Positions 32,889-53,211 of a stretch of DNA of 64,000 bases are shown here, in pieces. The notes under the pieces were generated by a model, which was not told where the DNA came from, did no database searches, and saw nothing but the letters and a program-made list of their open reading frames with translations. The first letter of the stretch is position 1; each line of letters begins with the position of its first letter. The position numbers and the translations under genes are program-made. Source of the stretch: Blastocladiella emersonii ATCC 22665 (Eukaryota; Fungi; Blastocladiomycota); assembly GCA_025594325.1 (NCBI GenBank), contig JANHCV010000001.1, positions 4,154,001 through 4,218,000 on the forward strand. The letters are read 5' to 3'.

Positions 32889-34184
32889 ATGTCGCTCCCG
32901 ACCAACGGCGTCACCGTCGTCCTCGGCTCCCAGTGGGGCGACGAGGGCAAGGGCAAGCTCGTCGACGTGCTCGCGCAGGAGGCCGACGTCGTCGCCCGCT
33001 GCCAGGGCGGCAACAACGCCGGCCACACGATCGTCGTCGACGGCAAGAAGTTCGACTTCCACATGCTGCCGTCGGGCCTCATCAACCCCGACTGCATCTC
33101 GGTCATCGGCAACGGCGTCGTCGTGCACCTGCCCTCGCTGTTCGCCGAGCTCGAGACCACCGAGAAGAAGGGCATCCCGTGCGCCGGCCGCCTCTTCGTC
33201 TCGGCCCGCGCCCACCTCGTCTTCGACGTGCACCAGATCGTCGACGGCCTGCGCGAGCTCGAGCGCGGCGGCTCCACCATCGGCACCACCCGCAAGGGCA
33301 TCGGACCGGCCTACTCGTCCAAGGCCTCGCGCTCGGGCCTGCGCGTCCACCACCTCTTCAACTTTGACGAGTTTGCCGAGCACTTCACCAAGTTCGTCGC
33401 CAACCGCAAGAAGCGCTACGGCGACTTCGACTACGACGTGGCCGCCGAGCTCGACCGGTATCGCGCCTACGCCGAGCGCCTGCGCCCCATGGTCATCGAC
33501 ACCGTGTCCTACATGAACAAGTCGATTGTCGCCAAGAAGCGCGTCCTCGTCGAGGGCGCCAACGCCGCCATGCTCGACATCGATTTCGGCACCTACCCCT
33601 ACGTCACCTCCTCCAACACCACCGTCGGCGGCGTGTGCACCGGTCTCGGCATCGCGCCCACCCGCATCGCCAAGGTCATCGGCGTCGTCAAGGCGTACAC
33701 GACGCGCGTCGGCGGCGGCCCGTTCCCGACCGAGCAGCTCAACTCGGTCGGCGAGCACCTGCAAACGGTCGGCGCCGAGTTCGGCGTGACCACGGGCCGC
33801 AAGCGCCGGTGCGGCTGGCTCGACATGGTCGTGCTCAACTACTCGCACGCCATCAACGGGTACACGTCCATCAACCTGACCAAGCTCGACGTGCTCGACC
33901 AGCTGCCCGAGGTCAAGATCGGCGTCAAGTACACGCACACGCCAACAGGAGAGGTGCTCGACTCGTTCCCCGCCGATCTCAAGTTCCTGTCCGAGTGCGA
34001 GGTCACCTACGAGACCTTCCCCGGCTGGATGACCGACATCACCAAGGTCCGCAAGTGGGACGACCTGCCCGTCAACGCCCAGAAGTACGTGCGCCGCATC
34101 GAGGAGCTCATGGGCGTGCCCGTCGAGTGGATCGGCGTCGGGCCCGGCCGCGAGGCCCTCGTGTCGGTGCCCCTGCGCAACTAG
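32889..34184 (+). CDS. ADE12: Adenylosuccinate synthetase
   Basis: [93 protein letters not shown]. Intronless, 431 aa. Confidence 0.97.
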
Positions 34185-34449
34185 GTCCCCTCTTAGCTGT
34201 CTACTAGCTGTTGTTCATATCAGTTCCCCCCTCTCGTAATCGTATATAACCCCTTGATATTCGAAAACCACTACTTGATGATCGACGGGATTGGGGATGC
34301 TGCAGCAACTGGTCCAAGTGAGCGGTCATGGAAGCGTCGTCTAACGTTGAGCCCTGGTTCTGGTCTAGCGCACGATCGAACGCGATGACCAGCGAAAAGA
34401 ACATAAAGAACAACTATCGTGCACGACCGGAAGGCCAAACGGTGAACAA

Positions 34450-34836
34450 CGCGTGCCTCGACCGCCTCATCGGACTTGGGATTAAACCACCGTTCGATGA
34501 GAGCGTTGCCAAGGAACGAGAAAAGCCGCCGTTCGTCACGAGCCGTTTGTTTCCTGAATCGCAAGTGAACTCGCGCGTCACGACCACGGCCATGGCCGCC
34601 GAGACAAATTTGTCGTACCAAAACAAGTGATAGAGGTCGCAACGGCCCTTTAGCTCGGCACTCTCCGCTCAGCGACGATCATGACCATGGACTCACGAGT
34701 TCAAGGTGTCCTGCTGAGTGATTGAACGAAGAAGAAGTTCGAAGCCGACTACTTCAAAGAACGGTGAGGCTGTACGTCGCGGCCGCGCCCATAACCATGG
34801 TCATCGAGAATACCCAACGAGAATCAGGACGCACGG
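34450..34836. repeat. Diverged outer extension of the inverted repeat (left)
   Basis: Matches the reverse complement of ~51553-52016 in blocks, e.g. CGACCACGGCCATGGCCGCCGAGAC vs CGACCACGACCATGGCCATCGAGAC and AGCCGACTACTTCAA vs AGCCGAGGACTTCAA, with indels. Outer limit approximate. Confidence 0.7.
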
Positions 34837-35129
34837 GCACAACAGCCTCGCTGAGCAGGTTCACCGTGGCCGCGGCCACGGCCATCGTTAGATCGATGGT
34901 ACCTTTCTGCTTGCCAGTAACCATGCCTGACCACACAACTTGGACAAGCAAGGACGCAAAACGAGATTGCGCAGGGACGGGCGGAAAACGAGAACGCGAC
35001 CACCAACCACTACGACCACGAACCACTCAGCCACGAGAAAATATAAGCATACACACACGACAACTACTATTGAAGAATACAACTAGGAGATCACACCCGA
35101 GAAACACACACAACCGAAACAAAAGAAAC

Positions 35130-37049
35130 TTAGGCAAGGAGGGCGACGACGATGGCCGCGGCCGCGACGGCAACGGCCGAGCCTGCAGCAACACCAGCCG
35201 CAGAGCTGACCTTGGACGACGACGGGGCACCAGCACTGGTCGAGAGGGCCTGGACGGCGGGGATGGCCGACTCGGAGTAGTCGTCCTTGACGGCGGCGGC
35301 GACGAACGCGGCCGACTCGGCGGTCAGGTCCTGGATCGTGGGCAGCGTCGCGACGTAGGCCGGGTTGTCGTTGGCCTTGACGGCAATCTCGCGGTTCAGG
35401 TCGTCGCGGACGGCGTTGAGCGCGGCCTCGGCGGCGCGCATCTTGGCAATGGCGACCTCGCGCGGGATCATGGGCATGAGCTTGGTGATGAGGACCTCGG
35501 GCATGGGCGCGACGGCGGCGAGCTGGTAGTCCTGCGCCGTGATCGTGGTCGTGGTCGTCGAGTTGGCGGCGGCGAGAGCCGTGACGTTGGTCTGGTTGGC
35601 GGGGGCAGCAGCGGGGGCGGTGCCGTTGAAGGGAGCCGTGGCGTTGACGCTGAGCGGGGTCGGGAACACGGCCGAGGTCGCCGTCGCCGTCTTGGTAACC
35701 GTGGCCGAGGCCGAGGCCGTGGCGGTGGAAGTCGAGTTACTGGCGGCCTCGCCCTCGCGCAGCGCACGGAGCGCGCGCTGGGCACGCTCGCCGGGGCCGA
35801 CGTTGTTGGGGACCGAGTCGTACGTGTAGCACAGGCGCGAGCGGTAGTAGAGCATGTCGCGGTTGGTGTAGCGCGACTCGTACAGGACGGTGCCGGCCGA
35901 CGCCTCGACCTTGAGCTCGCCCGCGGCCGTGTCGAGGTTGACAAAGTTGGCGGGGCTCAGTCCCTGCCACTATGTTACGAATGCGCGCGATGGAATCGTT
36001 TGGTCAGTCACTGGTTTGAGATGCGAGGAATGCGGGTGGTGAGGGGCGGGCGGGGATGTGAAAAGCGGTGAAGTGGGACCACGGCCAGCTCCCTCGACCA
36101 CTCCCTCGACCCCCTCGACCCCCAGAAACAACACAGATATCGTACCGTGGCCCAAAGGAGGTCGATATAGCAATGGTGGGCCCAGAAAGTCGGGTCGGCG
36201 GGCGAGATGTTGGGGTCGCCCATGTGGCCGCCGACGATGCCGTGCCACGAGTTGTGGGGCGAGTTCTCGATGGTGTTGGACATCTCGCCAAAGGTGCGGA
36301 AGCGGCGCATGGCCTCGGCCATGACCTGCGACTGCGGGAGCCACTCGAAGGCGCCGTTGTTGGGCGCGACCCACGGGTTGCGGGTGACGATGCGGCCCGT
36401 GTCGTCGGTCAGGCCGGCGAAGGGCGCCGAGAGTGGGCCGGCCTTCATCTCGCCGAGGCCCGAGGTGGTGAAAATGCTCGAGCGGGTCGGCGCGCGCGAG
36501 TCGGCGAGCTCGTTCCAGTACGGGAGGCCGGTCAGCACGTTGTTGGACGCCTTGATGAGCGCGTCCTCGAACTCGACGAGCAGGGCGCGGTGCATCGGCA
36601 GGAACTGCGTCGTCATGTGGTAGCGCATCCCGGTGCGGTGCTTGCGCGTGAACTGGTCGAGCTGGCCCGAGCGCTTCATGCTATTATTGACGAGGACGTG
36701 GTGGTGGTGGTGCGAGGGTGAGTGACGATGGATCTCGAGTCGAAAGAGGGAGTCGCGGCCGTGATCGGAAAGGTGATCGCGCGGGTAGTCGCTGCTCGGC
36801 CCCAAGAAACACATCAGTAGAGAAAAGAAAAGAAAAGTACCTCATGATGGCATCGGAAAAGGCCTTCTTCTCGGTGGCCGAGAGCGACGAGAAGGCGCGG
36901 CGGGTGCGGATACCGTTCGGGCACGCGGCGGCGGGGACCGCGGTCGGGGCGGGGGCGGCCGTCGCGCGGGTCGAGGTCGACGCACGCTGGGCGTTGGCGA
37001 GGTGCGCAAGCGCAAGGAGGAGCAGGAGGAGGGGCGCGGCGCGAGCCAT
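35130..37049 (-). CDS. Secreted tyrosinase-like (type-3 di-copper) protein with GPI-like tail, copy 1 (3 exons)
   Basis: Signal peptide; RTRRAFSSLSATEKKAF; CuA RKHRTGMRYHMTTQFLPMHR; GLPYWN; CuB HNSWHGIVGGHM...DPTFWAHHCYID; LCYTYD; S/T/A linker and hydrophobic C-terminus. Confidence 0.85.
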
Positions 37050-38172
37050 GGTCGATCGTCTATTGTATAGAAGGGAGTCTATGGGGGTGGGTGGCAAAGG
37101 GGGTGGAGGAGGGAGCTCGGGAGCAGGATCACTCGAGGAAATGCGCAAGTAGAAGACGACGGCGGATGAGGACTCGTTCGTGGAGACGGGGCGGGGAGGG
37201 CAAGCTTCTTATACGCGGCCGCCCGCTCGCTGAGCCTTGACGCAGCGGCGACGTGGCCGAAGAGCTGGGCCAGCAGCATGGCCAGCGCGGGCCAAGCAAG
37301 CGGGCGATGGATGGTGGCTCGGCTCGGGCCCGCCCGTATCCACCTCGCTGGGAACGGTCGGGCATGGGCAAGCGGCAGGATTTTCTTTCCCGTTCACTCG
37401 CCGTGTGTACGGGCAGCGATTAATATCGCAGCACAAAGAAGCTGAGACGGCCGAGGCAAGCGCAGTCGGGCCACAAGCGCAAGCAACGCGTCGAGCTGTT
37501 GCATCGTTTCACTCTTGGCGCGTCGCTGTCGGCGTCGACGGAGGTGGCTGCGGTGTTTCACGCGTGGTAGAGCGGGGCCGCGATCATCCATCGGGTGCGC
37601 TGCAAACCGTAGATCCAAATTGGACGACCCTGCAACGTGTTCCTAGTTCTTCCGCGGCGACCCGGCACGGGCGCCGACGCCGACGCCGAGTGACGTCGTC
37701 TGTCCGGAGAAACGGGACCCAGAGGCCGACCGGCATGGCGGCGTTGATCAGTCCGTGAGCTCGGTGCTCGGCCAGCCGGGTCATTCCATGCTGCGGGCTT
37801 TTCCAACTGTTGCAAGCTGTTCTTCGCGGCGCTCGGCCATCTTGAAGCGGGGGGCAAAGAAACGTGTTCTTGCCCGTTGGTTGCTGTTGCACTCGGGCAC
37901 CCTCGTCTTGGCGTCCCGCCGCCCGGCCCAGCAGCAGCGCCCTGTTCGCGTGAAATTATTCAAGCGCTTCGCAAGAGTGATGCAACGCTCCCGGAGGTGA
38001 AGCTGGGTCGCGCCGTGTCGCGTCGCGTCGCGCGCGTGTGTGACTCCGTGATAGCAATCGTGATCGCAGTGATCGCGATGGGATCACATGGCTCGGCTGC
38101 TGCTGCGCCACCCACACACCCACACCGCAGCACCCCGAGGTCGTCATTTTCATCATCGGGAGTGGCGAGGGC

Positions 38173-39711
38173 TTGCACCAACGAGCGACCGACTGGACCC
38201 ACCCAACCTCGCGTGCTCGCTCGTGCACTTGCTCCTCTCACGGCAACAAAAAACGTCATGTAAACACCATGAAGCAGGTGCACAACGACACCACGCACTC
38301 GTGGTCCACCTCGTGGGTTGGCTGGGCGCACCAGCATCATCCCGGGCATATCGCGAGCGGCGGCGAGCCTTGGGTCCCACCCACCCCGCCGTCCGTTCCA
38401 TCATCACCGACACGCGAGTGGTCGAGCGCGCTGCGCGAATCGAAGGAGATGCGCGACTGTCATATGTGCTCCTTGGCGAGCGGCGGGCACTCTTTGAGCT
38501 CGCTTGCATCGGGAGCTCGCACGCCAACATTCTGCGCCGTAACTGAGCCATATCGGGACCGTGATTCGAACAGGCTCGCAGTGTCATTCGGCAGGCTGCC
38601 CGACGAGCTCGTCGCAAACATCGCGCTCAGGTATCTCGACCGGCGCTCACTCATGGCGCTTGCAGCAGCGTGCCGCCGCGTGCGAACGGCGGTGCTCGCG
38701 GACACGGCCGTCGTGCGTGGGCGGCTTCGCGTTGACCTTGGCCCGCTCGCTGGCCTGCTCGACGACGACCGCCTACGCCTCCTCGTGCAGACCGACTTTC
38801 GGTCCGTCGTCGAAGAGCACCCCGCGTGGAGCCGGGTCACGCTCGAACCTCTGACGCGTCCACGTGCGACGACGGAGCAGGAGCGCGCCGTCGATGCGCA
38901 GCAGCACACCCAACAGCTCCGCTGCAACGTGGGCACATCAACCGAGCCCGCTCCTCAAATCTGTACGGTCCCGTGGGTGCGCGAGCTGGACCTGAGCGAG
39001 GCCCGCGTGACGCACCTCGATGCGCTGACGCACGGCATGGCGCCGAGCTCCCCGTCAGCAGCACCGACCTCGTCTTCGCTCGACTTGCGACATCTCCATC
39101 TCGCGGGCACTCGCCACTTTTTCCCGGCCCAGCAGTTCCGGCTACCCGCCGCCGCCGCCCCTTCAACCGTCGCAGCATTCCCGCCACCCCCGTCACCGCC
39201 GCGCAACGATCAGGACTGCGATGTCGTGCCGCCAGTGCAACCAACACTGCCGTCCGCGCTTCTGAACTCGCTCGAGCGGTACCCATGGATGTTCCACCTT
39301 CGCTCACTTTCGCTCGCCAACACGGTCGGCGTGACGGATACGACGCTCCACGCACTCGCGGCGCACCTCTGCCCCAATCTTGCCGAGCTTGACCTTGCGT
39401 ACTGCGACCACATCAGCGACGCGGGCGTGGCAGCGCTGCTCCGTGCCCCTGCTACCGTGGCGCCGAGGCTCTGGCAGCGCCTGCGGCTCACAGGATGCGT
39501 CCGTATCGAAGGAACGACGCTCATCGCCCCTGTCTCGGTGGTCCACCTCGATCTGTCACTTACAGCCGTTGGCGCCTCGGTGCTGAGCGAGTGCTGCAAC
39601 TCGCCGGCCGTGCTGTGGGTCAAGGCGCGCGCCTGCGCGTTCGTGGAGCCGGACGAGGCCCAAGCCGTGCAGCGTGCGTTCCGCGCCTCCGGTAAGACCT
39701 TGTTGATGTGA
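38173..39711 (+). CDS. F-box/leucine-rich-repeat protein, copy 1 (true start probably downstream, e.g. ATG 38449)
   Basis: F-box FGRLPDELVANIALRYLDRRSLMALAAACRRVR. AMN1-type LRRs LRSLSLANTVGVTDTTLHALA, CPNLAELDLAYCDHISDAGVAAL, LQRLRLTGCVRI. Confidence 0.8.
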   Translation: MHQRATDWTHPTSRARSCTCSSHGNKKRHVNTMKQVHNDTTHSWSTSWVGWAHQHHPGHIASGGEPWVPPTPPSVPSSPTREWSSALRESKEMRDCHMCSLASGGHSLSSLASGARTPTFCAVTEPYRDRDSNRLAVSFGRLPDELVANIALRYLDRRSLMALAAACRRVRTAVLADTAVVRGRLRVDLGPLAGLLDDDRLRLLVQTDFRSVVEEHPAWSRVTLEPLTRPRATTEQERAVDAQQHTQQLRCNVGTSTEPAPQICTVPWVRELDLSEARVTHLDALTHGMAPSSPSAAPTSSSLDLRHLHLAGTRHFFPAQQFRLPAAAAPSTVAAFPPPPSPPRNDQDCDVVPPVQPTLPSALLNSLERYPWMFHLRSLSLANTVGVTDTTLHALAAHLCPNLAELDLAYCDHISDAGVAALLRAPATVAPRLWQRLRLTGCVRIEGTTLIAPVSVVHLDLSLTAVGASVLSECCNSPAVLWVKARACAFVEPDEAQAVQRAFRASGKTLLM

Positions 39712-40706
39712 ACAGACTTGGAGGATTAATAGTCTTGAATCAATGGGTGTCGCTACTCGTGTGCGACGAGTTTGAGCGGATTTTGCGGTACTGGCCATGC
39801 TCACGAGCTTCAAGCGTGCGGCTTAGATCAGGTGGGTGGCGCAGCGCGTCGACGAGCCTTCAACCGTTGGGCCCGATGGCCTTGAAAGGAAGCTCATCTC
39901 ATCGCCGATTCCACCGCCGTGGCCAAACACGTCCTGAACGAACACTGCGCCAATCACGACGCGGGAATGGCTGACCCACGCTGCCTTCCGCACATCGCGA
40001 ACGCGCACGCGCACGCTCACCGGCGGGCGTCGGTTGAATTCAGACCCCATCAAGTCGTAGCGGCGCCACAATGCGCCTGGTCACCGGGCCATGCATACGC
40101 CGTCAGCCTGACCAACCTTGGCCCGAGCTTAGCCAGCCAGCTACCGGGCGATGTGAGCAACGCGACGGGTGCGGCATCGCCCCATTCCGCTCCACCCGCT
40201 GCGTTTCCAGCGACTGGTGCAGCGTTCGGGCAGGCCGTGCATGGGCGCTCATTTCGCGGCGGTTGATTGGCTTTCCCGACTTGGCACGCACGCGTGGGCC
40301 CAGTCGGCGATACCCGGAGCAACGAACCCGTACGGCGTCGTGGGTGGGGTGGCTCAGCAGCAGCAACGGCGGTAACCTCAGCGGCACCTTGCGCTCAAAG
40401 AGGAAACGTGTCGGCTCTTCTCGCTGCTTCGCGCGGATACGGTTCCGACCTGCGCCGAAATGAGCTGTAATGAGCAGCAAATGAGACGTAGCGACTGTGC
40501 TGCATGGAGCGGCGGGCGGGCGAGCGAACGCTGGGTCGTTTCGGTGATCCGCCTCGCTCACCCTGGCTGGCGACCTCACGCTCGTCTCGCCCGCCGACCG
40601 CCCGCCCGAGGGTACAAATACCGCGCCTCCCCCGCGCCCCCGGCTCTCGATCCTCACCAAACAGTCAACCCAACCCTTCTCTCAACGCTATCACCAACCG
40701 GCCAAG

Positions 40707-41702
40707 ATGCAGATCATCGCCATCCTCGCCTCCATGGCCCTCCTCGCCGTCACGGCTTCGGCCGCCCCCGCCCCCTCGGCCTCGACCGGCGTCACCTGCG
40801 CCAAGACCTTCACGCCCGGCTTCAAGTCAACCATGACGTGCCACTGCCTCGCGTCGTGCACCGTCACCGGCCGCTGCTGCCCCGACTACGACGCCTTCTC
40901 CGCCTCGGCCTCGGCCTTCATGCGCTCCAAGGACATGGTGATCGCGCGCCGCGGCCCGACCACCGACCCCGCCAAGGACAAGCCGTACCACAAGTCCGAG
41001 CCCGCCATCACGGCCATGACGACCAAGGGCACCGGCAAGGACGCGGTCGCGCTGCTCACGGTGCGCCAGTGCACCTTCGAGGACGTGGCGCGCGCGCCCG
41101 CCAACCCGGGCAACGGCGACATGACGACCATGCAGATGCCCAAGTGGGAGCTGCGCGAGTGCAGCGAGGGCTACGACGTGGTCGCGCACAAGGCCGGCGG
41201 CAACGGCCAGCTCGTCGCCTTCGAGGACGCGGTCAAGGTGCCCGCGGCGGTGCGCGTCGCCGTCGGCCCGCTGCCGCCGACCGAGATCGCCACGATCCAG
41301 CCGTACCCGGCGCCGTGGAACGTCATGTACTACGCCGAGGTCAAGGGCGCGTCGGCCGCGTCGGCGTACAAGGCGGCGCTGGTGCACGAGCCGCTCGTGT
41401 CCGGGTTCACGGCCGACCTCAACAAGCGCGCGTCGGGCAAGCTCGGGTTCGACCCGACGACGGGCCGCAAGTGGTCGGTGCGCGCGGCCACGTTCGGCAC
41501 GGCCGAGCCCGTCAAGTACGCGCCGACGACGCAGGACGTGACGGCGCTCCAGCTCGACGAGGAGTTTGCGTCGCGCGCGCACTCGGCCAACTACCACGTC
41601 ACGCCGACCCGCGGCGGCTACCTGCGCCGCGTGTTTGACGGCCAGCAGTGGGTCGACACGGTCGATGCCCGCGGCAACCGCGTCGTGGCTTCCACTCTCT
41701 AA
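40707..41702 (+). CDS. Secreted protein with N-terminal somatomedin-B-like domain, copy 1 (331 aa)
   Basis: Signal peptide MQIIAILASMALLAVTASA; motif CHCLASCTVTGRCCPDY; intronless with strong codon bias. C-terminal domain not recognised. Confidence 0.8.
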   Translation: MQIIAILASMALLAVTASAAPAPSASTGVTCAKTFTPGFKSTMTCHCLASCTVTGRCCPDYDAFSASASAFMRSKDMVIARRGPTTDPAKDKPYHKSEPAITAMTTKGTGKDAVALLTVRQCTFEDVARAPANPGNGDMTTMQMPKWELRECSEGYDVVAHKAGGNGQLVAFEDAVKVPAAVRVAVGPLPPTEIATIQPYPAPWNVMYYAEVKGASAASAYKAALVHEPLVSGFTADLNKRASGKLGFDPTTGRKWSVRAATFGTAEPVKYAPTTQDVTALQLDEEFASRAHSANYHVTPTRGGYLRRVFDGQQWVDTVDARGNRVVASTL

Positions 41703-41763
41703 GGTGTCTTTTGGATGTGTCCTCTCCTCCCCTTTTACCCTATCTAGTCCTAGAAGTGTTTCC

Positions 41764-41779
41764 GTGTGTGTGTGTGTGT
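41764..41779 (+). repeat. (GT)8 microsatellite in the 3' region of the SMB-like gene; mirrored as (AC)8 at 44610-44625
   Basis: Read directly; same length in both arms. Confidence 0.9.
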
Positions 41780-42313
41780 CTCCCCTTGTGTGCCTTATCC
41801 TGTCGGTATCCCCTCCCAAAAGTGCAATACAAACTTAACGCTCAGCGTGTTCTTCTCCAACGTTTGATTGTGGCTACGAGTGAGCTTTGGCCCGTGGTCT
41901 GCGCGAAGAAAAGAAGAGAAACTACAAAACATGAGTACGGAGAGAGTGGCCGCGCTCAGTTGGTGTCCCGGCACTCGTTCGTTCCGCGGAGCGTCGCAAA
42001 GGACGCGTCGAGATATCACGTGCGCATGAGCCTCACGTGCAGCTGTCTCACGCGGCCGCGCGCCGCGCGCCGCCGTGCCCCATTTAGGCGACGGCGCGCT
42101 TCGTAAAACAGCCACGGCACAGTCGAGTGGTTAGAACACGCAGGACCCCGCACCCTGGAATGGGGATGCCGCCGCCTGCGCTGAACGAAGCGCTTAGCTT
42201 TTGCTTAGCTTTTGCTTCGGACCCCGATCCTGCCCTTCGGTTGTTATCAATCCTATTCTCTGCAATCAAAGTTTTTTTTGACGGGAGAAACTGCATATGC
42301 GACGACTTCTCGA

Positions 42314-43790
42314 TCAGTCGAACAGGTCCACGTCGCCCACGTTGACGCCGTCAATCAGGATCTCGCCCGAAGCCCACTGGACGAGGCGGAAGATGGCTGT
42401 CGCAAGGTTAACCTTGCTGGCACCCGTGCGGCCGCAGCACGCGAGGCGCGAGCGCGGCGGGACCTTGAAGTTGATGTCGTGCAGCAAGAAACCCGTCGTC
42501 GCCGAGTACTGGGCCCTCAGGTCGCGCACCTCGACGGCGCCGTGCGCGGGCCAGCTGGGCGGGATCTGTGCCGCCGCGAGGCCGCCTAAGGGCTTCTGCT
42601 CGATGTGGTGCAGCCAGTGGTCTACGCTCGGCGCTGTTGACGTCTATTCCGACCATGGACTGCATGCGAACCGGCTACATGGCGCAGTCGACCGCGTTGA
42701 GTGCGTACGACAGGATGGTGCCCATAAGCGCGGGGTCCATCCACGAGCGCGACAGCACGAGCACGAAGCCCGTCGACAGCACAATGAAGGCACCGAGCAG
42801 GTCGGTGCGCACCGTCAGCCACCGGTTGCTGACCCACAGGAAGAAGAAGGCGCGGTGGTTGACGTCGATGCGCTTGTACAGCTCGGTCAGGAACCGGGTC
42901 TCGTGGCGGTAGGTACGCGCGGATCACCAACGTGCGCGTGAGCGTCTCGGAGAAGAGCGAGAAACTCGGGCTGCGCGTCAACGAGTCGATGCGCTTGAGC
43001 TAGCGGCTGGTCGCGAGGACCAGGTTCGACAGAGAAAGGTAGGCGAGGCCGATCGGGACGAGGAACACGAGGAACGCGGGCACGGCGATCACGATCAGGA
43101 CGAGAATTGACGCGAGCTGGTACCCGTTGATGAGGCCGTCGACCAGGTCGCGGGTGAGCTCGCGGTCGATGGCCTTCATGTCGCGCGACAAGCGGTTGAT
43201 GATGCGGCCGAGCTGCGTCACGTCCAAGAAGCGGATCTTGGCTTACAGCAGGTTGGGGAACACCTCGTCGTGTAGGTATCGCGAAGCGCGCACCGACCCG
43301 CGGAACTGCACGACGAGGCGCGCTCCGATGGCCACGAGCGTGAGTGCGCCGATCAGCACGTAGACGAAAATGAACCACGTTACGCCGACGCGTGGGCCAC
43401 CGGCGGCCAGCATGTTGTAAGCGTTGGTCCAGTACTGCATACACAGGTCCTGGCCGACGAGGCCGAGCTGCTTCAGGAACAGGAACGCGATCAGGAACGC
43501 CCGGCACGGCAGGCCAACGGCTGCGTCGATCCATGCACGGTACACGCGCCACTCGACTCCGTCGCAGGAACAGTCCTTCTCGATGACTGTGTGGCCCATT
43601 TGCGCGTTCTCGGCGTCAGGAGCGGCCGCAGTGACGGCGGTCGCGCTTTCCTCGGACGCCACCGTGGCGGCCGACGACTTCTCGACGCTGCCCGTGGACG
43701 GCAGGCTGGGCTGGCGCGGGCGAGGGTACTCGAACGCGAGCAGCGCGGCAGCACTGTTTTTTTTGGCAGCGAACAAGCATCTGGCACGTA
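42314..43790 (-). pseudogene. ABCC/MRP (Ybt1/Bpt1-like) transporter pseudogene fragment: linker, TMD2 and N-half of NBD2
   Basis: LL*AKIRFLDVTQLGRIINRLSRD, TSR*LKRIDSLTRSP, SNRWLTVRTDLLG, M*PVRM, PPSWPAHGAVEV, degenerate Walker A CCGRTGASKVNL. Stops at 43243, 43000 and 42675, at least two frameshifts, truncated at the arm boundary. Confidence 0.88.
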
Positions 43791-43837
43791 CTGCTCTCGG
43801 GGTCAGTGAGACAAGGCCGGCCACGTTCTTGAAGAAC

Positions 43838-43990
43838 CGCACCGCAAATTTTATCCCCATGAGTGTCCTCGACGCGGGCCGCGTCGCGCAGTTTAGGCTC
43901 ACCGCACGAGCTCATGCTGCAAGACGGCATCTTTCACTGCATGTGCCGTAAGGGCAACGACTTTGAATTGCTGTTGCTCGCCCCCCCCCC
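43838..43990 (+). pseudogene. Extreme C-terminal fragment of an ABCC transporter, in opposite orientation to the TMD2 fragment
   Basis: VLDAGRVAQF/(frameshift)GSPHELMLQDGIFHCMCRKGNDFELL resembles the ABCC C-terminal consensus V(L/M)DAG.V.E(F/Y)D.P..LL....F..MC..SG.L..L. Confidence 0.72.
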
Positions 43991-44686
43991 CAAGCAATCA
44001 GATCAACACCTCGATCACTGTGCATTCCTCCCCGACTCGCACCTCGCTATACCTATCGTTGGTCTGTTCGACTGATCGAGAAGTCGTCGCATATGCAGTT
44101 TCTCCCGTCAAAAAAAACTTTGATTGCAGAGAATAGGATTGATAACAACCGAAGGGCAGGATCGGGGTCCGAAGCAAAAGCTAAGCAAAAGCTAAGCGCT
44201 TCGTTCAGCGCAGGCGGCGGCATCCCCATTCCAGGGTGCGGGGTCCTGCGTGTTCTAACCACTCGACTGTGCCGTGGCTGTTTTACGAAGCGCGCCGTCG
44301 CCTAAATGGGGCACGGCGGCGCGCGGCGCGCGGCCGCGTGAGACAGCTGCACGTGAGGCTCATGCGCACGTGATATCTCGACGCGTCCTTTGCGACGCTC
44401 CGCGGAACGAACGAGTGCCGGGACACCAACTGAGCGCGGCCACTCTCTCCGTACTCATGTTTTGTAGTTTCTCTTCTTTTCTTCGCGCAGACCACGGGCC
44501 AAAGCTCACTCGTAGCCACAATCAAACGTTGGAGAAGAACACGCTGAGCGTTAAGTTTGTATTGCACTTTTGGGAGGGGATACCGACAGGATAAGGCACA
44601 CAAGGGGAGACACACACACACACACGGAAACACTTCTAGGACTAGATAGGGTAAAAGGGGAGGAGAGGACACATCCAAAAGACACC

Positions 44687-45682
44687 TTAGAGAGTGGAAG
44701 CCACGACGCGGTTGCCGCGGGCATCGACCGTGTCGACCCACTGCTGGCCGTCAAACACGCGGCGCAGGTAGCCGCCGCGGGTCGGCGTGACGTGGTAGTT
44801 GGCCGAGTGCGCGCGCGACGCAAACTCCTCGTCGAGCTGGAGCGCCGTCACGTCCTGCGTCGTCGGCGCGTACTTGACGGGCTCGGCCGTGCCGAACGTG
44901 GCCGCGCGCACCGACCACTTGCGGCCCGTCGTCGGGTCGAACCCGAGCTTGCCCGACGCGCGCTTGTTGAGGTCGGCCGTGAACCCGGACACGAGCGGCT
45001 CGTGCACCAGCGCCGCCTTGTACGCCGACGCGGCCGACGCGCCCTTGACCTCGGCGTAGTACATGACGTTCCACGGCGCCGGGTACGGCTGGATCGTGGC
45101 GATCTCGGTCGGCGGCAGCGGGCCGACGGCGACGCGCACCGCCGCGGGCACCTTGACCGCGTCCTCGAAGGCGACGAGCTGGCCGTTGCCGCCGGCCTTG
45201 TGCGCGACCACGTCGTAGCCCTCGCTGCACTCGCGCAGCTCCCACTTGGGCATCTGCATGGTCGTCATGTCGCCGTTGCCCGGGTTGGCGGGCGCGCGCG
45301 CCACGTCCTCGAAGGTGCACTGGCGCACCGTGAGCAGCGCGACCGCGTCCTTGCCGGTGCCCTTGGTCGTCATGGCCGTGATGGCGGGCTCGGACTTGTG
45401 GTACGGCTTGTCCTTGGCGGGGTCGGTGGTCGGGCCGCGGCGCGCGATCACCATGTCCTTGGAGCGCATGAAGGCCGAGGCCGAGGCGGAGAAGGCGTCG
45501 TAGTCGGGGCAGCAGCGGCCGGTGACGGTGCACGACGCGAGGCAGTGGCACGTCATGGTTGACTTGAAGCCGGGCGTGAAGGTCTTGGCGCAGGTGACGC
45601 CGGTCGAGGCCGAGGGGGCGGGGGCGGCCGAAGCCGTGACGGCGAGGAGGGCCATGGAGGCGAGGATGGCGATGATCTGCAT
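44687..45682 (-). CDS. Secreted somatomedin-B-like protein, copy 2
   Basis: Translation identical to 40707-41702. Confidence 0.8.
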   Translation of the reverse strand: MQIIAILASMALLAVTASAAPAPSASTGVTCAKTFTPGFKSTMTCHCLASCTVTGRCCPDYDAFSASASAFMRSKDMVIARRGPTTDPAKDKPYHKSEPAITAMTTKGTGKDAVALLTVRQCTFEDVARAPANPGNGDMTTMQMPKWELRECSEGYDVVAHKAGGNGQLVAFEDAVKVPAAVRVAVGPLPPTEIATIQPYPAPWNVMYYAEVKGASAASAYKAALVHEPLVSGFTADLNKRASGKLGFDPTTGRKWSVRAATFGTAEPVKYAPTTQDVTALQLDEEFASRAHSANYHVTPTRGGYLRRVFDGQQWVDTVDARGNRVVASTL

Positions 45683-46677
45683 CTTGGCCGGTTGGTGATA
45701 GCGTTGAGAGAAGGGTTGGGTTGACTGTTTGGTGAGGATCGAGAGCCGGGGGCGCGGGGGAGGCGCGGTATTTGTACCCTCGGGCGGGCGGTCGGCGGGC
45801 GAGACGAGCGTGAGGTCGCCAGCCAGGGTGAGCGAGGCGGATCACCGAAACGACCCAGCGTTCGCTCGCCCGCCCGCCGCTCCATGCAGCACAGTCGCTA
45901 CGTCTCATTTGCTGCTCATTACAGCTCATTTCGGCGCAGGTCGGAACCGTATCCGCGCGAAGCAGCGAGAAGAGCCGACACGTTTCCTCTTTGAGCGCAA
46001 GGTGCCGCTGAGGTTACCGCCGTTGCTGCTGCTGAGCCACCCCACCCACGACGCCGTACGGGTTCGTTGCTCCGGGTATCGCCGACTGGGCCCACGCGTG
46101 CGTGCCAAGTCGGGAAAGCCAATCAACCGCCGCGAAATGAGCGCCCATGCACGGCCTGCCCGAACGCTGCACCAGTCGCTGGAAACGCAGCGGGTGGAGC
46201 GGAATGGGGCGATGCCGCACCCGTCGCGTTGCTCACATCGCCCGGTAGCTGGCTGGCTAAGCTCGGGCCAAGGTTGGTCAGGCTGACGGCGTATGCATGG
46301 CCCGGTGACCAGGCGCATTGTGGCGCCGCTACGACTTGATGGGGTCTGAATTCAACCGACGCCCGCCGGTGAGCGTGCGCGTGCGCGTTCGCGATGTGCG
46401 GAAGGCAGCGTGGGTCAGCCATTCCCGCGTCGTGATTGGCGCAGTGTTCGTTCAGGACGTGTTTGGCCACGGCGGTGGAATCGGCGATGAGATGAGCTTC
46501 CTTTCAAGGCCATCGGGCCCAACGGTTGAAGGCTCGTCGACGCGCTGCGCCACCCACCTGATCTAAGCCGCACGCTTGAAGCTCGTGAGCATGGCCAGTA
46601 CCGCAAAATCCGCTCAAACTCGTCGCACACGAGTAGCGACACCCATTGATTCAAGACTATTAATCCTCCAAGTCTGT

Positions 46678-48216
46678 TCACATCAACAAGGTCTTACCGG
46701 AGGCGCGGAACGCACGCTGCACGGCTTGGGCCTCGTCCGGCTCCACGAACGCGCAGGCGCGCGCCTTGACCCACAGCACGGCCGGCGAGTTGCAGCACTC
46801 GCTCAGCACCGAGGCGCCAACGGCTGTAAGTGACAGATCGAGGTGGACCACCGAGACAGGGGCGATGAGCGTCGTTCCTTCGATACGGACGCATCCTGTG
46901 AGCCGCAGGCGCTGCCAGAGCCTCGGCGCCACGGTAGCAGGGGCACGGAGCAGCGCTGCCACGCCCGCGTCGCTGATGTGGTCGCAGTACGCAAGGTCAA
47001 GCTCGGCAAGATTGGGGCAGAGGTGCGCCGCGAGTGCGTGGAGCGTCGTATCCGTCACGCCGACCGTGTTGGCGAGCGAAAGTGAGCGAAGGTGGAACAT
47101 CCATGGGTACCGCTCGAGCGAGTTCAGAAGCGCGGACGGCAGTGTTGGTTGCACTGGCGGCACGACATCGCAGTCCTGATCGTTGCGCGGCGGTGACGGG
47201 GGTGGCGGGAATGCTGCGACGGTTGAAGGGGCGGCGGCGGCGGGTAGCCGGAACTGCTGGGCCGGGAAAAAGTGGCGAGTGCCCGCGAGATGGAGATGTC
47301 GCAAGTCGAGCGAAGACGAGGTCGGTGCTGCTGACGGGGAGCTCGGCGCCATGCCGTGCGTCAGCGCATCGAGGTGCGTCACGCGGGCCTCGCTCAGGTC
47401 CAGCTCGCGCACCCACGGGACCGTACAGATTTGAGGAGCGGGCTCGGTTGATGTGCCCACGTTGCAGCGGAGCTGTTGGGTGTGCTGCTGCGCATCGACG
47501 GCGCGCTCCTGCTCCGTCGTCGCACGTGGACGCGTCAGAGGTTCGAGCGTGACCCGGCTCCACGCGGGGTGCTCTTCGACGACGGACCGAAAGTCGGTCT
47601 GCACGAGGAGGCGTAGGCGGTCGTCGTCGAGCAGGCCAGCGAGCGGGCCAAGGTCAACGCGAAGCCGCCCACGCACGACGGCCGTGTCCGCGAGCACCGC
47701 CGTTCGCACGCGGCGGCACGCTGCTGCAAGCGCCATGAGTGAGCGCCGGTCGAGATACCTGAGCGCGATGTTTGCGACGAGCTCGTCGGGCAGCCTGCCG
47801 AATGACACTGCGAGCCTGTTCGAATCACGGTCCCGATATGGCTCAGTTACGGCGCAGAATGTTGGCGTGCGAGCTCCCGATGCAAGCGAGCTCAAAGAGT
47901 GCCCGCCGCTCGCCAAGGAGCACATATGACAGTCGCGCATCTCCTTCGATTCGCGCAGCGCGCTCGACCACTCGCGTGTCGGTGATGATGGAACGGACGG
48001 CGGGGTGGGTGGGACCCAAGGCTCGCCGCCGCTCGCGATATGCCCGGGATGATGCTGGTGCGCCCAGCCAACCCACGAGGTGGACCACGAGTGCGTGGTG
48101 TCGTTGTGCACCTGCTTCATGGTGTTTACATGACGTTTTTTGTTGCCGTGAGAGGAGCAAGTGCACGAGCGAGCACGCGAGGTTGGGTGGGTCCAGTCGG
48201 TCGCTCGTTGGTGCAA
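46678..48216 (-). CDS. F-box/LRR protein, copy 2
   Basis: Translation identical to 38173-39711. Confidence 0.8.
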   Translation of the reverse strand: MHQRATDWTHPTSRARSCTCSSHGNKKRHVNTMKQVHNDTTHSWSTSWVGWAHQHHPGHIASGGEPWVPPTPPSVPSSPTREWSSALRESKEMRDCHMCSLASGGHSLSSLASGARTPTFCAVTEPYRDRDSNRLAVSFGRLPDELVANIALRYLDRRSLMALAAACRRVRTAVLADTAVVRGRLRVDLGPLAGLLDDDRLRLLVQTDFRSVVEEHPAWSRVTLEPLTRPRATTEQERAVDAQQHTQQLRCNVGTSTEPAPQICTVPWVRELDLSEARVTHLDALTHGMAPSSPSAAPTSSSLDLRHLHLAGTRHFFPAQQFRLPAAAAPSTVAAFPPPPSPPRNDQDCDVVPPVQPTLPSALLNSLERYPWMFHLRSLSLANTVGVTDTTLHALAAHLCPNLAELDLAYCDHISDAGVAALLRAPATVAPRLWQRLRLTGCVRIEGTTLIAPVSVVHLDLSLTAVGASVLSECCNSPAVLWVKARACAFVEPDEAQAVQRAFRASGKTLLM

Positions 48217-49339
48217 GCCCTCGCCACTCCCGATGATGAAAATGACGACCTCGGGGTGCTGCGGTGTGGGTGTGTGGGTGGCGCAGCAGCAGCCGAGCCA
48301 TGTGATCCCATCGCGATCACTGCGATCACGATTGCTATCACGGAGTCACACACGCGCGCGACGCGACGCGACACGGCGCGACCCAGCTTCACCTCCGGGA
48401 GCGTTGCATCACTCTTGCGAAGCGCTTGAATAATTTCACGCGAACAGGGCGCTGCTGCTGGGCCGGGCGGCGGGACGCCAAGACGAGGGTGCCCGAGTGC
48501 AACAGCAACCAACGGGCAAGAACACGTTTCTTTGCCCCCCGCTTCAAGATGGCCGAGCGCCGCGAAGAACAGCTTGCAACAGTTGGAAAAGCCCGCAGCA
48601 TGGAATGACCCGGCTGGCCGAGCACCGAGCTCACGGACTGATCAACGCCGCCATGCCGGTCGGCCTCTGGGTCCCGTTTCTCCGGACAGACGACGTCACT
48701 CGGCGTCGGCGTCGGCGCCCGTGCCGGGTCGCCGCGGAAGAACTAGGAACACGTTGCAGGGTCGTCCAATTTGGATCTACGGTTTGCAGCGCACCCGATG
48801 GATGATCGCGGCCCCGCTCTACCACGCGTGAAACACCGCAGCCACCTCCGTCGACGCCGACAGCGACGCGCCAAGAGTGAAACGATGCAACAGCTCGACG
48901 CGTTGCTTGCGCTTGTGGCCCGACTGCGCTTGCCTCGGCCGTCTCAGCTTCTTTGTGCTGCGATATTAATCGCTGCCCGTACACACGGCGAGTGAACGGG
49001 AAAGAAAATCCTGCCGCTTGCCCATGCCCGACCGTTCCCAGCGAGGTGGATACGGGCGGGCCCGAGCCGAGCCACCATCCATCGCCCGCTTGCTTGGCCC
49101 GCGCTGGCCATGCTGCTGGCCCAGCTCTTCGGCCACGTCGCCGCTGCGTCAAGGCTCAGCGAGCGGGCGGCCGCGTATAAGAAGCTTGCCCTCCCCGCCC
49201 CGTCTCCACGAACGAGTCCTCATCCGCCGTCGTCTTCTACTTGCGCATTTCCTCGAGTGATCCTGCTCCCGAGCTCCCTCCTCCACCCCCTTTGCCACCC
49301 ACCCCCATAGACTCCCTTCTATACAATAGACGATCGACC

Positions 49340-51259
49340 ATGGCTCGCGCCGCGCCCCTCCTCCTGCTCCTCCTTGCGCTTGCGCACCTCGCCAACGCCC
49401 AGCGTGCGTCGACCTCGACCCGCGCGACGGCCGCCCCCGCCCCGACCGCGGTCCCCGCCGCCGCGTGCCCGAACGGTATCCGCACCCGCCGCGCCTTCTC
49501 GTCGCTCTCGGCCACCGAGAAGAAGGCCTTTTCCGATGCCATCATGAGGTACTTTTCTTTTCTTTTCTCTACTGATGTGTTTCTTGGGGCCGAGCAGCGA
49601 CTACCCGCGCGATCACCTTTCCGATCACGGCCGCGACTCCCTCTTTCGACTCGAGATCCATCGTCACTCACCCTCGCACCACCACCACCACGTCCTCGTC
49701 AATAATAGCATGAAGCGCTCGGGCCAGCTCGACCAGTTCACGCGCAAGCACCGCACCGGGATGCGCTACCACATGACGACGCAGTTCCTGCCGATGCACC
49801 GCGCCCTGCTCGTCGAGTTCGAGGACGCGCTCATCAAGGCGTCCAACAACGTGCTGACCGGCCTCCCGTACTGGAACGAGCTCGCCGACTCGCGCGCGCC
49901 GACCCGCTCGAGCATTTTCACCACCTCGGGCCTCGGCGAGATGAAGGCCGGCCCACTCTCGGCGCCCTTCGCCGGCCTGACCGACGACACGGGCCGCATC
50001 GTCACCCGCAACCCGTGGGTCGCGCCCAACAACGGCGCCTTCGAGTGGCTCCCGCAGTCGCAGGTCATGGCCGAGGCCATGCGCCGCTTCCGCACCTTTG
50101 GCGAGATGTCCAACACCATCGAGAACTCGCCCCACAACTCGTGGCACGGCATCGTCGGCGGCCACATGGGCGACCCCAACATCTCGCCCGCCGACCCGAC
50201 TTTCTGGGCCCACCATTGCTATATCGACCTCCTTTGGGCCACGGTACGATATCTGTGTTGTTTCTGGGGGTCGAGGGGGTCGAGGGAGTGGTCGAGGGAG
50301 CTGGCCGTGGTCCCACTTCACCGCTTTTCACATCCCCGCCCGCCCCTCACCACCCGCATTCCTCGCATCTCAAACCAGTGACTGACCAAACGATTCCATC
50401 GCGCGCATTCGTAACATAGTGGCAGGGACTGAGCCCCGCCAACTTTGTCAACCTCGACACGGCCGCGGGCGAGCTCAAGGTCGAGGCGTCGGCCGGCACC
50501 GTCCTGTACGAGTCGCGCTACACCAACCGCGACATGCTCTACTACCGCTCGCGCCTGTGCTACACGTACGACTCGGTCCCCAACAACGTCGGCCCCGGCG
50601 AGCGTGCCCAGCGCGCGCTCCGTGCGCTGCGCGAGGGCGAGGCCGCCAGTAACTCGACTTCCACCGCCACGGCCTCGGCCTCGGCCACGGTTACCAAGAC
50701 GGCGACGGCGACCTCGGCCGTGTTCCCGACCCCGCTCAGCGTCAACGCCACGGCTCCCTTCAACGGCACCGCCCCCGCTGCTGCCCCCGCCAACCAGACC
50801 AACGTCACGGCTCTCGCCGCCGCCAACTCGACGACCACGACCACGATCACGGCGCAGGACTACCAGCTCGCCGCCGTCGCGCCCATGCCCGAGGTCCTCA
50901 TCACCAAGCTCATGCCCATGATCCCGCGCGAGGTCGCCATTGCCAAGATGCGCGCCGCCGAGGCCGCGCTCAACGCCGTCCGCGACGACCTGAACCGCGA
51001 GATTGCCGTCAAGGCCAACGACAACCCGGCCTACGTCGCGACGCTGCCCACGATCCAGGACCTGACCGCCGAGTCGGCCGCGTTCGTCGCCGCCGCCGTC
51101 AAGGACGACTACTCCGAGTCGGCCATCCCCGCCGTCCAGGCCCTCTCGACCAGTGCTGGTGCCCCGTCGTCGTCCAAGGTCAGCTCTGCGGCTGGTGTTG
51201 CTGCAGGCTCGGCCGTTGCCGTCGCGGCCGCGGCCATCGTCGTCGCCCTCCTTGCCTAA
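49340..51259 (+). CDS. Secreted tyrosinase-like protein with GPI-like tail, copy 2; exons 49340-49548, 49709-50243, 50420-51259
   Basis: Mirror of 35130-37049. Introns GTACTT...AATAG and GTACGA...CTGAC...CATAG restore one frame through CuA, CuB and LCYTYD. Confidence 0.85.
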
Positions 51260-51552
51260 GTTTCTTTTGTTTCGGTTGTGTGTGTTTCTCGGGTGTGATC
51301 TCCTAGTTGTATTCTTCAATAGTAGTTGTCGTGTGTGTATGCTTATATTTTCTCGTGGCTGAGTGGTTCGTGGTCGTAGTGGTTGGTGGTCGCGTTCTCG
51401 TTTTCCGCCCGTCCCTGCGCAATCTCGTTTTGCGTCCTTGCTTGTCCAAGTTGTGTGGTCAGGCATGGTTACTGGCAAGCAGAAAGGTACCATCGATCTA
51501 ACGATGGCCGTGGCCGCGGCCACGGTGAACCTGCTCAGCGAGGCTGTTGTGC

Positions 51553-52016
51553 GAGTGCGTCCTGATATTCGTTGCGTCGTTCTAGTTGCGTCTTCCGCTT
51601 GCTTGCTTGGCAATGAACGGACTCGATGTCCATGATCACGTCGAGTGAGTGATCGCTCTGGCCGTGGCCATTGGCGCGGTCGCGAGGCGTAGCCTTAACG
51701 TTTTTCGCATTCCAGCTTGAAGTCCTCGGCTGACTGCTTTTGCCCTGCTCTGTTGCTGGACAGGAAGCGCTTTGAGCCTGACAGCCCATGTCCACGGTCC
51801 TTACTGAGCAGGGAGCGTTACACAACATGGCCCTTCGCGGCCGCCCTATCAACTGCTGCTCGCTCAAGATCCGGTCGTGGATCGTCTCGATGGCCATGGT
51901 CGTGGTCGCTACACGAAAGCTCGAGCGGTGAGTCAGGGAACAACGTGTTCCTGACCAAAGACTTGCTTCTGTCCTACTAGGCAAGGTTTCAATCCACGTC
52001 CAAGGTCGAGAACCAC
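51553..52016. repeat. Diverged outer extension of the inverted repeat (right)
   Basis: Its reverse complement aligns in blocks to 34450-34836, with about 100 bp extra sequence on this side. Limits approximate. Confidence 0.7.
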
Positions 52017-52177
52017 GGACGATGACAAGTACTCGAGAGCATCGACGCGAAAACAGCACCGCGAGACGTGACAAGTCGAGATGGCGGATCAACAAAAGGG
52101 GATGTGTATGTACACTCAGAGAGATCGAGATAGGGTAGGGATAGGTAGCACGCAAGGGACAGAAGTAGGCAAACGAC

Positions 52178-52768
52178 CTAGAACTCCTGCGAGTCGCTCT
52201 CGTCCTTGGCGGCGGCTATGGGGAACGAGCGCGAGTTCAAGTGTCAGCGTCGTCTTCACGAGTACCTCCGAGCAAGGAGAAGTGCGCGTACCCTTTTTCT
52301 TGGTGGCGGCGGGCGCGCCCGAGCCGGTCAGGAGGGTGGGCTGAATGTTGGGCAGAACACCACCCTGCGCGATCGTAACCGAGTGCAGCAGCTTGGACAG
52401 CTCCTCGTCGTTGCGGATCGCAAGCTGCAGGTGGCGGGGGATGATGCGGGCCTTCTTCTGGTCGCGCGCGGCGTTGCCCGCGAGCTCGAGAATCTCGGCC
52501 GTCAGGTACTCGAGGACCGCGGCCAGGTACACGGGCGCGCCGGCACCCGTGCGCGCAGAGTAGTTGCCCTTGCGCAGCATGCGGTGCAGGCGGCCGACGG
52601 GGAACTGCAGACCGGCCTTGGACGAGCTGGAGGATGCGAGTAGTCAAGGGGTCAGCAAGGTTCCACTCGATCCGAGCGACCCAGACAAGCGCCGACGTAC
52701 CGCGAGCTCGACTTCTTCTCGGACGACGCCGCGTCAGCCTTACCGCCCTTGCCGCCCTTGCCAGCCAT
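52178..52768 (-). CDS. HTA: Histone H2A with C-terminal SQEF motif (H2A.X-type); two introns
   Basis: [72 protein letters not shown]. The second intron (GTACGC...CTGAC...CATAG) gives the terminal exon [12 protein letters not shown]. Confidence 0.93.
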
Positions 52769-53211
52769 GTTTGTAGAGTGTGGTGGTGCGTGTGGAGGAT
52801 GAACTTGAAGATGCGCTCACGGTGGAGTGCGGCTCGACGTGGTCGAAGATGATGATAATCCAACGAGATGAGTTGGGTCTGGGAGAGAGAGCGTCGGCAT
52901 GGCGGGGCACTGGGGGTTACATGGTGTGCGGGCGGGGGGCAGGCGAGCGAGCGAGAAGGGGCCGCCGCCGCTGCCTTCGCGCGCCCCACGTTGCCGCGCG
53001 ACCGACCGGCTCCTGGAGCATCAGCTGATGCCAGCCCGTCTGCGATTGCGATGACAGCTGCCAGCTGCCGCCACGTGGGTGAGGTCATCGAGTCACCACC
53101 TCCATCCTCGCGACTCAGCCACAACGAGCGCTCAGACACACGCAACCACGAACTACGCTAAGTAAATGTATTGCTAGGAGGGAGAGGACGCAAACAACCC
53201 GCGGCACGCGC

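Follow-up and report, generated by a model that had tools for sequence, protein, structure and literature searches.

Identical gene-bearing arms and diverged flanks in a palindrome of Blastocladiella emersonii

Arms, margins and outer tier of the palindrome

The stretch of DNA analysed here (the window, 64,000 bp; contig 1:4154001-4218000) belongs to the fungus Blastocladiella emersonii ATCC 22665, of which one genome in one assembly was considered. It contains a palindrome, that is, an inverted repeat of 7,489 bp whose two arms show 0 differences by a repeat search and a base-by-base comparison, and whose arms are separated by a spacer of 1,738 bp (42326-44063; Table 1, in window coordinates unless a contig is named). 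Each arm carries a tyrosinase-like gene, a gene for an F-box/leucine-rich-repeat (LRR) protein and a gene whose product is of secreted type and contains a somatomedin-B-like domain. At its inner end, each arm consists of a copy of a dispersed element, here called E; the spacer holds pieces of an ABC-transporter gene; and outside the arms lies a pair of diverged sequences, X and X', which mirror each other and form what is called below the outer tier. As argued below, the arrangement is probably an old inverted duplication whose arms have been kept identical by gene conversion between them.

The tyrosinase-like gene has a signal-peptide-like start, a hydrophobic C-terminal tail and at least two frame changes in a three-frame reading, which are read as putative introns. 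It points outward in each arm, with its stop 294 bp inside the outer arm boundary, and has a 71% paralogue on contig 2. The start codon of the F-box/LRR gene was guessed. For the somatomedin-B-like gene, a third copy (89% identical) has been found at contig 1:3129644-3131490, and the arm protein encoded at 40707-41699 shares a 90% cluster with KAI9189742.1 ('hypothetical protein H9P43_001175 [Blastocladiella emersonii ATCC 22665]'). The paralogues of the arms elsewhere in the genome (84-89% and 71%) cover parts of the arm only.

The first-pass annotation of this DNA had described an abrupt end of identity at 34837/51552, and this coincides with the base-by-base boundary of the arms. It had also placed two 2-bp mismatches further out, up to 34815/51574; both are present, with figures that are right to within 1-3 bp, and one further single mismatch lies at 34814, so that the margin contains mismatches at 34814, 34821-22 and 34835-36. 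Immediately beyond this margin, two alignments show a 73-bp block on the right side only, a structural heterology 25 bp from the identity boundary. Past the block, the two flanks are homologous in diverged form. A local alignment of 34190-34811 with the reverse complement of 51578-52236 scored 43, against 11.8 +/- 1.6 in 300 dinucleotide shuffles (z = 20); its best-aligned stretch (34506-34803 with 51984-51659) runs inverted in a single register, and alignment of both flanks in direct orientation scored just 14. Over 34500-34836, the comparison gives 328 aligned sites, 67% identity, a Kimura two-parameter distance (K2P) of 0.44, a transition/transversion ratio of 1.2 and 119 gap columns. The flank homology with indels proposed in the annotation is therefore real, but its length is about 300-330 bp instead of some 400 bp, and its supposedly blocky look is that of a uniform 67% identity, under which the longest exact run observed (12 bp at 34823-34834, in the margin) is about what is expected. 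No clear gradient of identity was seen along the tier, and no mirror homology was detectable beyond it. The tier sits 294-624 bp downstream of the stop of the tyrosinase-like gene in each arm, between this gene and an adenylosuccinate synthetase (purA) gene on the left, and between it and an unnamed open reading frame (ORF), followed by DUS3, on the right.

Several identities for X and X' have been tried and rejected. A relic of ankyrin repeats was discarded after no Pfam signal appeared in 15 open pieces at E values up to 10, and after no periodicity of about 100 bp emerged from Tandem Repeats Finder (TRF) or from prefix/suffix alignment. A coding origin was also rejected: a 226-codon frame at 51538-52215 (-) has neither a Pfam match nor a paralogue in the genome, and a tblastn comparison with the left flank was weak (35% across stops). 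Searches for structured RNA or tRNA gave none, and mutation of the repeat-induced point mutation (RIP) type is at odds with symmetric substitution directions and the transition/transversion ratio given above. A dispersed repeat is contradicted by whole-genome searches, both BLAST-type and profile-based, which returned no copies other than X and X'. A sequence-only covariance model of X/X' scored 304 and 264 bits on its own two copies, and 22 bits on the next match in the genome; the weak matches (E value about 1e-3) belong to one unrelated multi-copy element. Three reading frames of this element are open over some 190 bp, and it occurs at contig 8:527743, contig 5:1111482, contig 2:1588478 and contig 6:371845 (L025, L026, L028 and L029). 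A similarity between purA and DUS3 (60% over 287 bp, E value 0.001) was treated as noise of GC-rich coding sequence, the genes being unrelated. Because the X/X' region has no Pfam, Rfam or tRNA match, its ORF has no relatives in the genome and the model finds two copies only, the outer tier is non-coding and locus-specific, and it truly continues the arms outward.

Spacer, element E and other inverted duplications

The spacer consists of two opposed ABC-transporter pieces, P2 and P1, built into the centre of the palindrome. The Pfam matches of P2 are colinear (ABC_membrane, profile positions 3-84, 89-162 and 194-267; ABC_tran, 1-49), and the piece is cut right after Walker A, exactly at the inner boundary of the left arm. 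It is 89% identical to the gene at L003 and shows at least three frame breaks. Both L003 and L004 are ABCC-type transporter loci, and the L003 gene is intact-looking, with introns. Between the spacer fragment and its closest paralogue K2P is 0.116, and since this distance is spread almost equally over the codon positions (0.114, 0.095 and 0.139), it corresponds to a neutral decay of this lineage by about 0.1 substitutions per site. P1 is recognisable by its C-terminal peptide through comparison with L003, and from 43865/43888 to 44388 an unbroken alignment with L003, L004 and L007 runs through it into E, as in the paralogous genes. No diverged inner tier was found within the spacer. A simple transposon with terminal inverted repeats (TIRs) was rejected as an explanation of the centre: its 'internal' part consists of pieces of the ABC gene, arranged with E as they natively are, and E itself is found in either orientation with respect to the centres of palindromes.

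Element E measures about 340 bp, with a 205-bp core, and has no Rfam match. A genome-wide comparison gives 22 matches, of which 18 form inverted pairs at seven loci and four are single copies. Inverted duplications thus account for 7 of the 11 E-bearing loci, an enrichment to be read with the possibility that these loci share ancestry, and in four of the seven paired loci E lies at or near the inner edge of the arm. Its terminus is discrete, is common to three different flank contexts and coincides here with the inner identity boundary. Further positions are contig 1:4314883, 1953898/1957866, 2099905/2104164 and 2920961/3010145; contig 4:864646/879212; contig 3:1233603/1255258; and contig 17:337485/469788. 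The copy closest to that of the window (88%) is in L007 (1752-3377; contig 1:4314251-4315876), between two direct repeats of about 475 bp that are 77-86% identical and 1.15 kb apart.

Other inverted duplications of the assembly, found via their similarity to E and to the ABC pieces and hence not a random sample, share parts of this architecture (Table 1). At four of them, the differences crowd the outermost 13-200 bp of otherwise perfect arms, and at three an indel or an unalignable block stands between a near-identical core and a more diverged tier. Diverged tails are absent from one of the contig 1 palindromes in Table 1 and from the 1.09-kb palindrome of L006. The inverted duplication of contig 4 has no identical core, and appears to be an old example that escaped homogenisation. 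The contig 3 palindrome is 26.9 kb in total with a spacer of just 164 bp, and beyond 3 edge bases its arms are identical; in other organisms, such a geometry of long arms and a very short spacer is usually unstable. Another large example is that of contig 17, whose copies lie about 130 kb apart and whose tiers are divided by a 2.36-kb insertion in one arm.

As for the surroundings, the window has a GC content of about 66%, and its genes are eukaryotic (F-box/LRR, DUS3-type zinc finger, tyrosinase, somatomedin B). Outside the palindrome, at 17579-17908, five overlapping copies of a 141-bp reference (60-73% identity) form a tandem array whose period is about 48 bp.

Table 1. Features of the palindrome, its surroundings and the inverted duplications compared with it.
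Feature	Position	Strand	Remarks
Left arm	34837-42325		7,489 bp; reverse complement of 44064-51552
Right arm	44064-51552		7,489-bp mirror copy of left arm; contains E_right
Tyrosinase-like gene, left arm	35130-37049	-	Pfam PF00264, E value 7.5e-24, at 36008-36814 (-); mirror copy 49340-51259 (+)
F-box/LRR protein gene, left arm	38269-39711	+	Pfam LRR_6, E value 1e-5, above cut-off; F-box-like, E value 7e-5, just under cut-off; mirror copy in right arm
Secreted-type protein gene with somatomedin-B-like domain, left arm	40707-41702	+	Pfam PF01033, E value 1e-5; mirror copy in right arm
Left outer margin	34812-34836		25 bp, 5 mismatches with partner 51553-51577
Right outer margin	51553-51577		Partner of 34812-34836
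Right-only block	51578-51650		73 bp, no left counterpart
X, left copy of diverged outer tier	34506-34811		Non-coding, about 55% GC; aligns to reverse complement of 51651-51984 at about 67% identity
X', right copy of diverged outer tier	51651-51984		Aligns inverted to X
E_left, inner end of left arm	41990-42325	-	Copy of the dispersed element of about 340 bp
E_right, inner end of right arm	44064-44399		Mirror copy of E_left
P2, ABCC-type transporter pseudogene piece	42323-43758	-	Second membrane domain and start of second ATP-binding domain; 4 reading-frame pieces
P1, relic of last ABC exon and first part of 3' flank	43865-44063	+	Opposed to P2; continuous with E_right
Adenylosuccinate synthetase (purA-type) gene	32889-34184	+	Left unique flank, outside repeat; Pfam PF00709, E value 5e-185
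Unnamed 302-codon ORF and DUS3-type dihydrouridine synthase gene	52237-54933	-	Right unique flank, outside repeat; Pfam Dus, zf-CCCH_DUS3L
Contig 1 palindrome	contig 1:1946244-1954651 / 1957437-1965845		Arms 8.4 kb; 5 substitutions in outermost 42 bp, 0 in next 8.36 kb; diverged tail absent
Contig 3 palindrome (L015, L034, L016)	contig 3:1231072-1244448 / 1244613-1257989		Arms 13.4 kb; 3 differences in outermost 15 bp; next, about 80 bp that do not align and a 179-bp tail of 71% identity (z = 37)
Contig 21 palindrome	contig 21		Arms at least 8.6 kb; 4 of 5 differences in outermost 13 bp
Contig 17 inverted duplication (L019, L020, L032, L033)	contig 17:331591-342415 / 473543-465000		Inner tier 99.67%; 2.36-kb indel; outer tier 97.85%
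L004 / L003	contig 1:2920034-2922277 / 3011278-3009034		2.2-kb core at 99.3%; 1.1-kb indel; then 84%; loci 87 kb apart, inverted
Contig 4 inverted duplication (L011, L009)	contig 4:862514-864837 / 881499-879211		About 78% in patches

Possible histories of the two tiers

Since a fresh copy cannot combine 100% identity inside with 67% over the 300 bp next to it, a history in two steps is required. An older inverted duplication existed at the locus, because the flank homology is real, lies in a single register, adjoins the arms and is unique to the locus. The first-pass annotation had offered two readings of this older event, and the one favoured here is that of an ancient inverted duplication with a converted inner part. 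In our opinion, the locus is probably an inverted duplication of old age that gene conversion from arm to arm has homogenised; the conversion tracts would have been stopped by structural heterology at both ends. The duplication would have copied at least 8 kb on contig 1, from about 620 bp downstream of the tyrosinase-like gene, via that gene, the F-box/LRR gene and the somatomedin-B-like gene, up to the E element; the ABC-transporter gene next to this element is at present a broken pseudogene. Intrachromosomal conversion between the arms would then have overwritten one with the other, repeatedly or at least very recently, which would leave the 7,489 bp identical. As conversion would require matching DNA on both sides of a tract, it would stop at a structural mismatch: at the right-only block on the outer side, and where the E copies meet different ABC gene pieces on the inner side. 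The roughly 330 bp beyond the outer barrier would have drifted to their present identity, as a fossil of the original duplication.

This reading is supported by several lines of evidence. The outer tier is locus-specific, follows one register and adjoins arms with zero differences. The pseudogene at the centre of the palindrome has decayed by about 0.1 substitutions per site, and uncorrected arms of that age would differ at about a thousand sites. Both identity boundaries abut heterologies. At other loci, interiors are perfect and mismatches are found in the last tens of bases; this concentration at the edges is expected where conversion fails near the end of homology and is unexpected for young uncorrected duplicates. 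Tier boundaries at those loci also coincide repeatedly with indels. From these observations we infer that conversion is the homogenising process and that heterologies are what pins the boundaries. The 67% tier and the decayed spacer pseudogene, both in one genome, point indirectly to a duplication older than the identity of its arms implies, as in concerted evolution.

Some observations weigh against conversion of an old duplication. The identity drops from 100% to about 70% with neither an intermediate zone nor a clear gradient, and a single recent event would give the same abrupt picture. X and X' have diverged by about 0.22 per lineage, roughly double the value of about 0.10 for the decay of the ABC pseudogene, which would fit either a centre younger than the outer tier or a faster evolution of X. 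The position of the E terminus exactly at the inner boundary could indicate an element-driven origin. Finally, a bias of conversion towards GC was not significant when the arm was compared, without an outgroup, with the third paralogue L008 (67 sites with G/C in the arm against 47 of the reverse kind, p = 0.075).

Some of these points lend weight to a recent re-duplication that ended in an old repeat, which we nevertheless consider unlikely. The first-pass annotation had proposed a related possibility, in which two old inverted repeats seeded the recent duplication. The ancestor would have had a single copy of the arm, in the order X, arm, E', ABC pieces, E and X'. A break or a stalled fork beside the inverted E pair would have led to invasion of the other E copy, to long outward copying by break-induced replication or template switching, and to rejoining in the pre-existing diverged X'. 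The inner arm ends are indeed E copies with their terminus at the identity boundary, E is frequent in inverted duplications and at their inner edges (see above), the step in identity is abrupt, the longest exact block shared by X and X' is right at the boundary, and the centre looks younger than the outer tier. Nevertheless, this history leaves unexplained how a locus-specific inverted pair of X and X' arose around single-copy genes, and its copying must end at the exact homologous point of a 67%-identical partner with an exact match of at most 12 bp. Such a match is far below the usual requirement of homologous recombination. In addition, the contig 3 palindrome has the same succession of margin, gap and tail, yet in that palindrome E is not central but lies 2.5 kb away from the outer edge, and the mismatch-dense margins at other loci point to old duplications with corrected interiors.

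A more general role of E has also been considered, namely that palindromes with genes are nucleated, and their centres fixed, by inverted E pairs: break repair or template switching from one E copy to the other would copy the flanking genes outward. We regard this as rather doubtful; if it were true, the many Blastocladiella palindromes, the present one among them, would go back to a single mechanism driven by the element, and conversion would have kept them identical afterwards.

It is very improbable that the locus is an artefact of assembly or polishing, either a misjoined palindrome or two truly different arms collapsed to one consensus. A single assembly is indeed the sole source of the locus. 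This assembly (32.65 Mb in 21 contigs) was obtained from PacBio HiFi reads with LJA, purge_dups and Pilon, the last with 65-bp reads (PMC9730499). The HiFi reads have a mean length of 10.5 kb at a depth of roughly 190-fold, which suffices to span an arm of 7.5 kb (PMC9730499). The locus is internal to a 5.14-Mb contig and far from its end, its outer flanks are different unique genes (purA and DUS3) that are not mirrored, and a fold-back read cannot yield diverged flanks. Moreover, wholesale collapse is unlikely here because the same pipeline retained between 1 and 19 arm differences in other palindromes.

Less credible still is the view that the flank similarity is no relic of a duplication and comes from a pair of dispersed repeats, a decayed gene of ankyrin repeats or a functional element that is conserved. 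It finds some favour in a CCATGG-type motif that recurs, by eye, about every 100 bp, against which stand the lack of ankyrin or other Pfam signal at E values up to 10, of significant internal periodicity and of a further genomic copy, a protein-level similarity of the flanks that is weak and crosses stops, and symmetric substitutions without RIP-like bias. Two last candidates were rejected: a foldback or long-TIR transposon, since the whole arm unit is not multi-copy and the 340-bp E is the only part that is, and a simple fold-back chimera, already discounted in the first-pass annotation, since the flank homology is real and specific to the locus, the flanks are independent unique genes, diverged and not identical, and the locus is internal to its contig.

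Relation to known palindromes and inverted repeats

Inverted arms are known from several other systems. Foldback and long-TIR transposons form one group, together with transposon-induced inverted duplications such as those from alternative transposition of maize Ac/Ds. With them, the Blastocladiella locus and three further loci of this genome share a repeated element that sits in inverted pairs at the inner arm ends. Unlike in those elements, the arms are not multi-copy, E has no recognised family, and neither a transposase nor a target-site duplication was seen. In Candida albicans, long inverted repeats are said to drive inversions and copy-number breakpoints. These are also kilobase-scale, near-identical, gene-bearing inverted repeats in a fungal nuclear genome; to our knowledge, none of them is reported to have a diverged tier attached, and at the Blastocladiella locus no rearrangement is documented. 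Another example is the inverted repeat of chloroplasts, which reportedly expands and contracts in an 'ebb and flow'. In both cases two inverted copies would be kept identical by copy-correction, with boundaries that move by conversion or by break repair copying past the boundary. The chloroplast repeat, however, belongs to an organelle with very frequent flip-flop recombination, whereas the locus described here is nuclear and its boundary would have retreated and not expanded.

The closest relatives are palindromes with genes in their arms on the X and Y chromosomes of mammals (human P1-P8; X palindromes of primates and mouse), which are kept by arm-to-arm conversion (PMC8600007, PMC8327919, PMC8981503, bioRxiv 10.1101/800185). 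Similar palindromes have been described on a willow sex chromosome (PMC7023750). As in the mammalian palindromes, the arms are large, inverted, more than 99% identical and set around a unique spacer, and they contain protein-coding genes; their identity is above that expected from the inferred age of the duplication, and structural change is concentrated at the centre and spacer. In contrast, the arms in Blastocladiella, at 7.5 kb, are far smaller, are located on an ordinary chromosome contig and not on a sex chromosome, belong to a zoosporic fungus and still have a decayed outer tier attached. Likewise, conservation across species and GC-biased conversion have been shown for primate palindromes, whereas the Blastocladiella locus is known from one genome. 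Most likely, the locus belongs to this known kind, palindromes kept identical by arm-to-arm conversion, which is not yet described in this fungus; the genome paper makes no mention of palindromes, inverted repeats or gene conversion (PMC9730499).

Taken with the others checked, this locus suggests that an early-diverging fungus has, on its ordinary chromosomes, palindromes that bear genes, are long-lived and are copy-corrected, and the conversion boundaries of Blastocladiella palindromes appear to be pinned by indels. In practical terms, the tyrosinase-like, F-box/LRR and somatomedin-B-like genes are present in two identical copies, a fact to be reckoned with when this model organism is used for knock-outs, expression counts or variant calling. 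Finally, the attached fossil tier allows age to be separated from identity in a single genome, whereas for sex-chromosome palindromes this needed a comparison between species.

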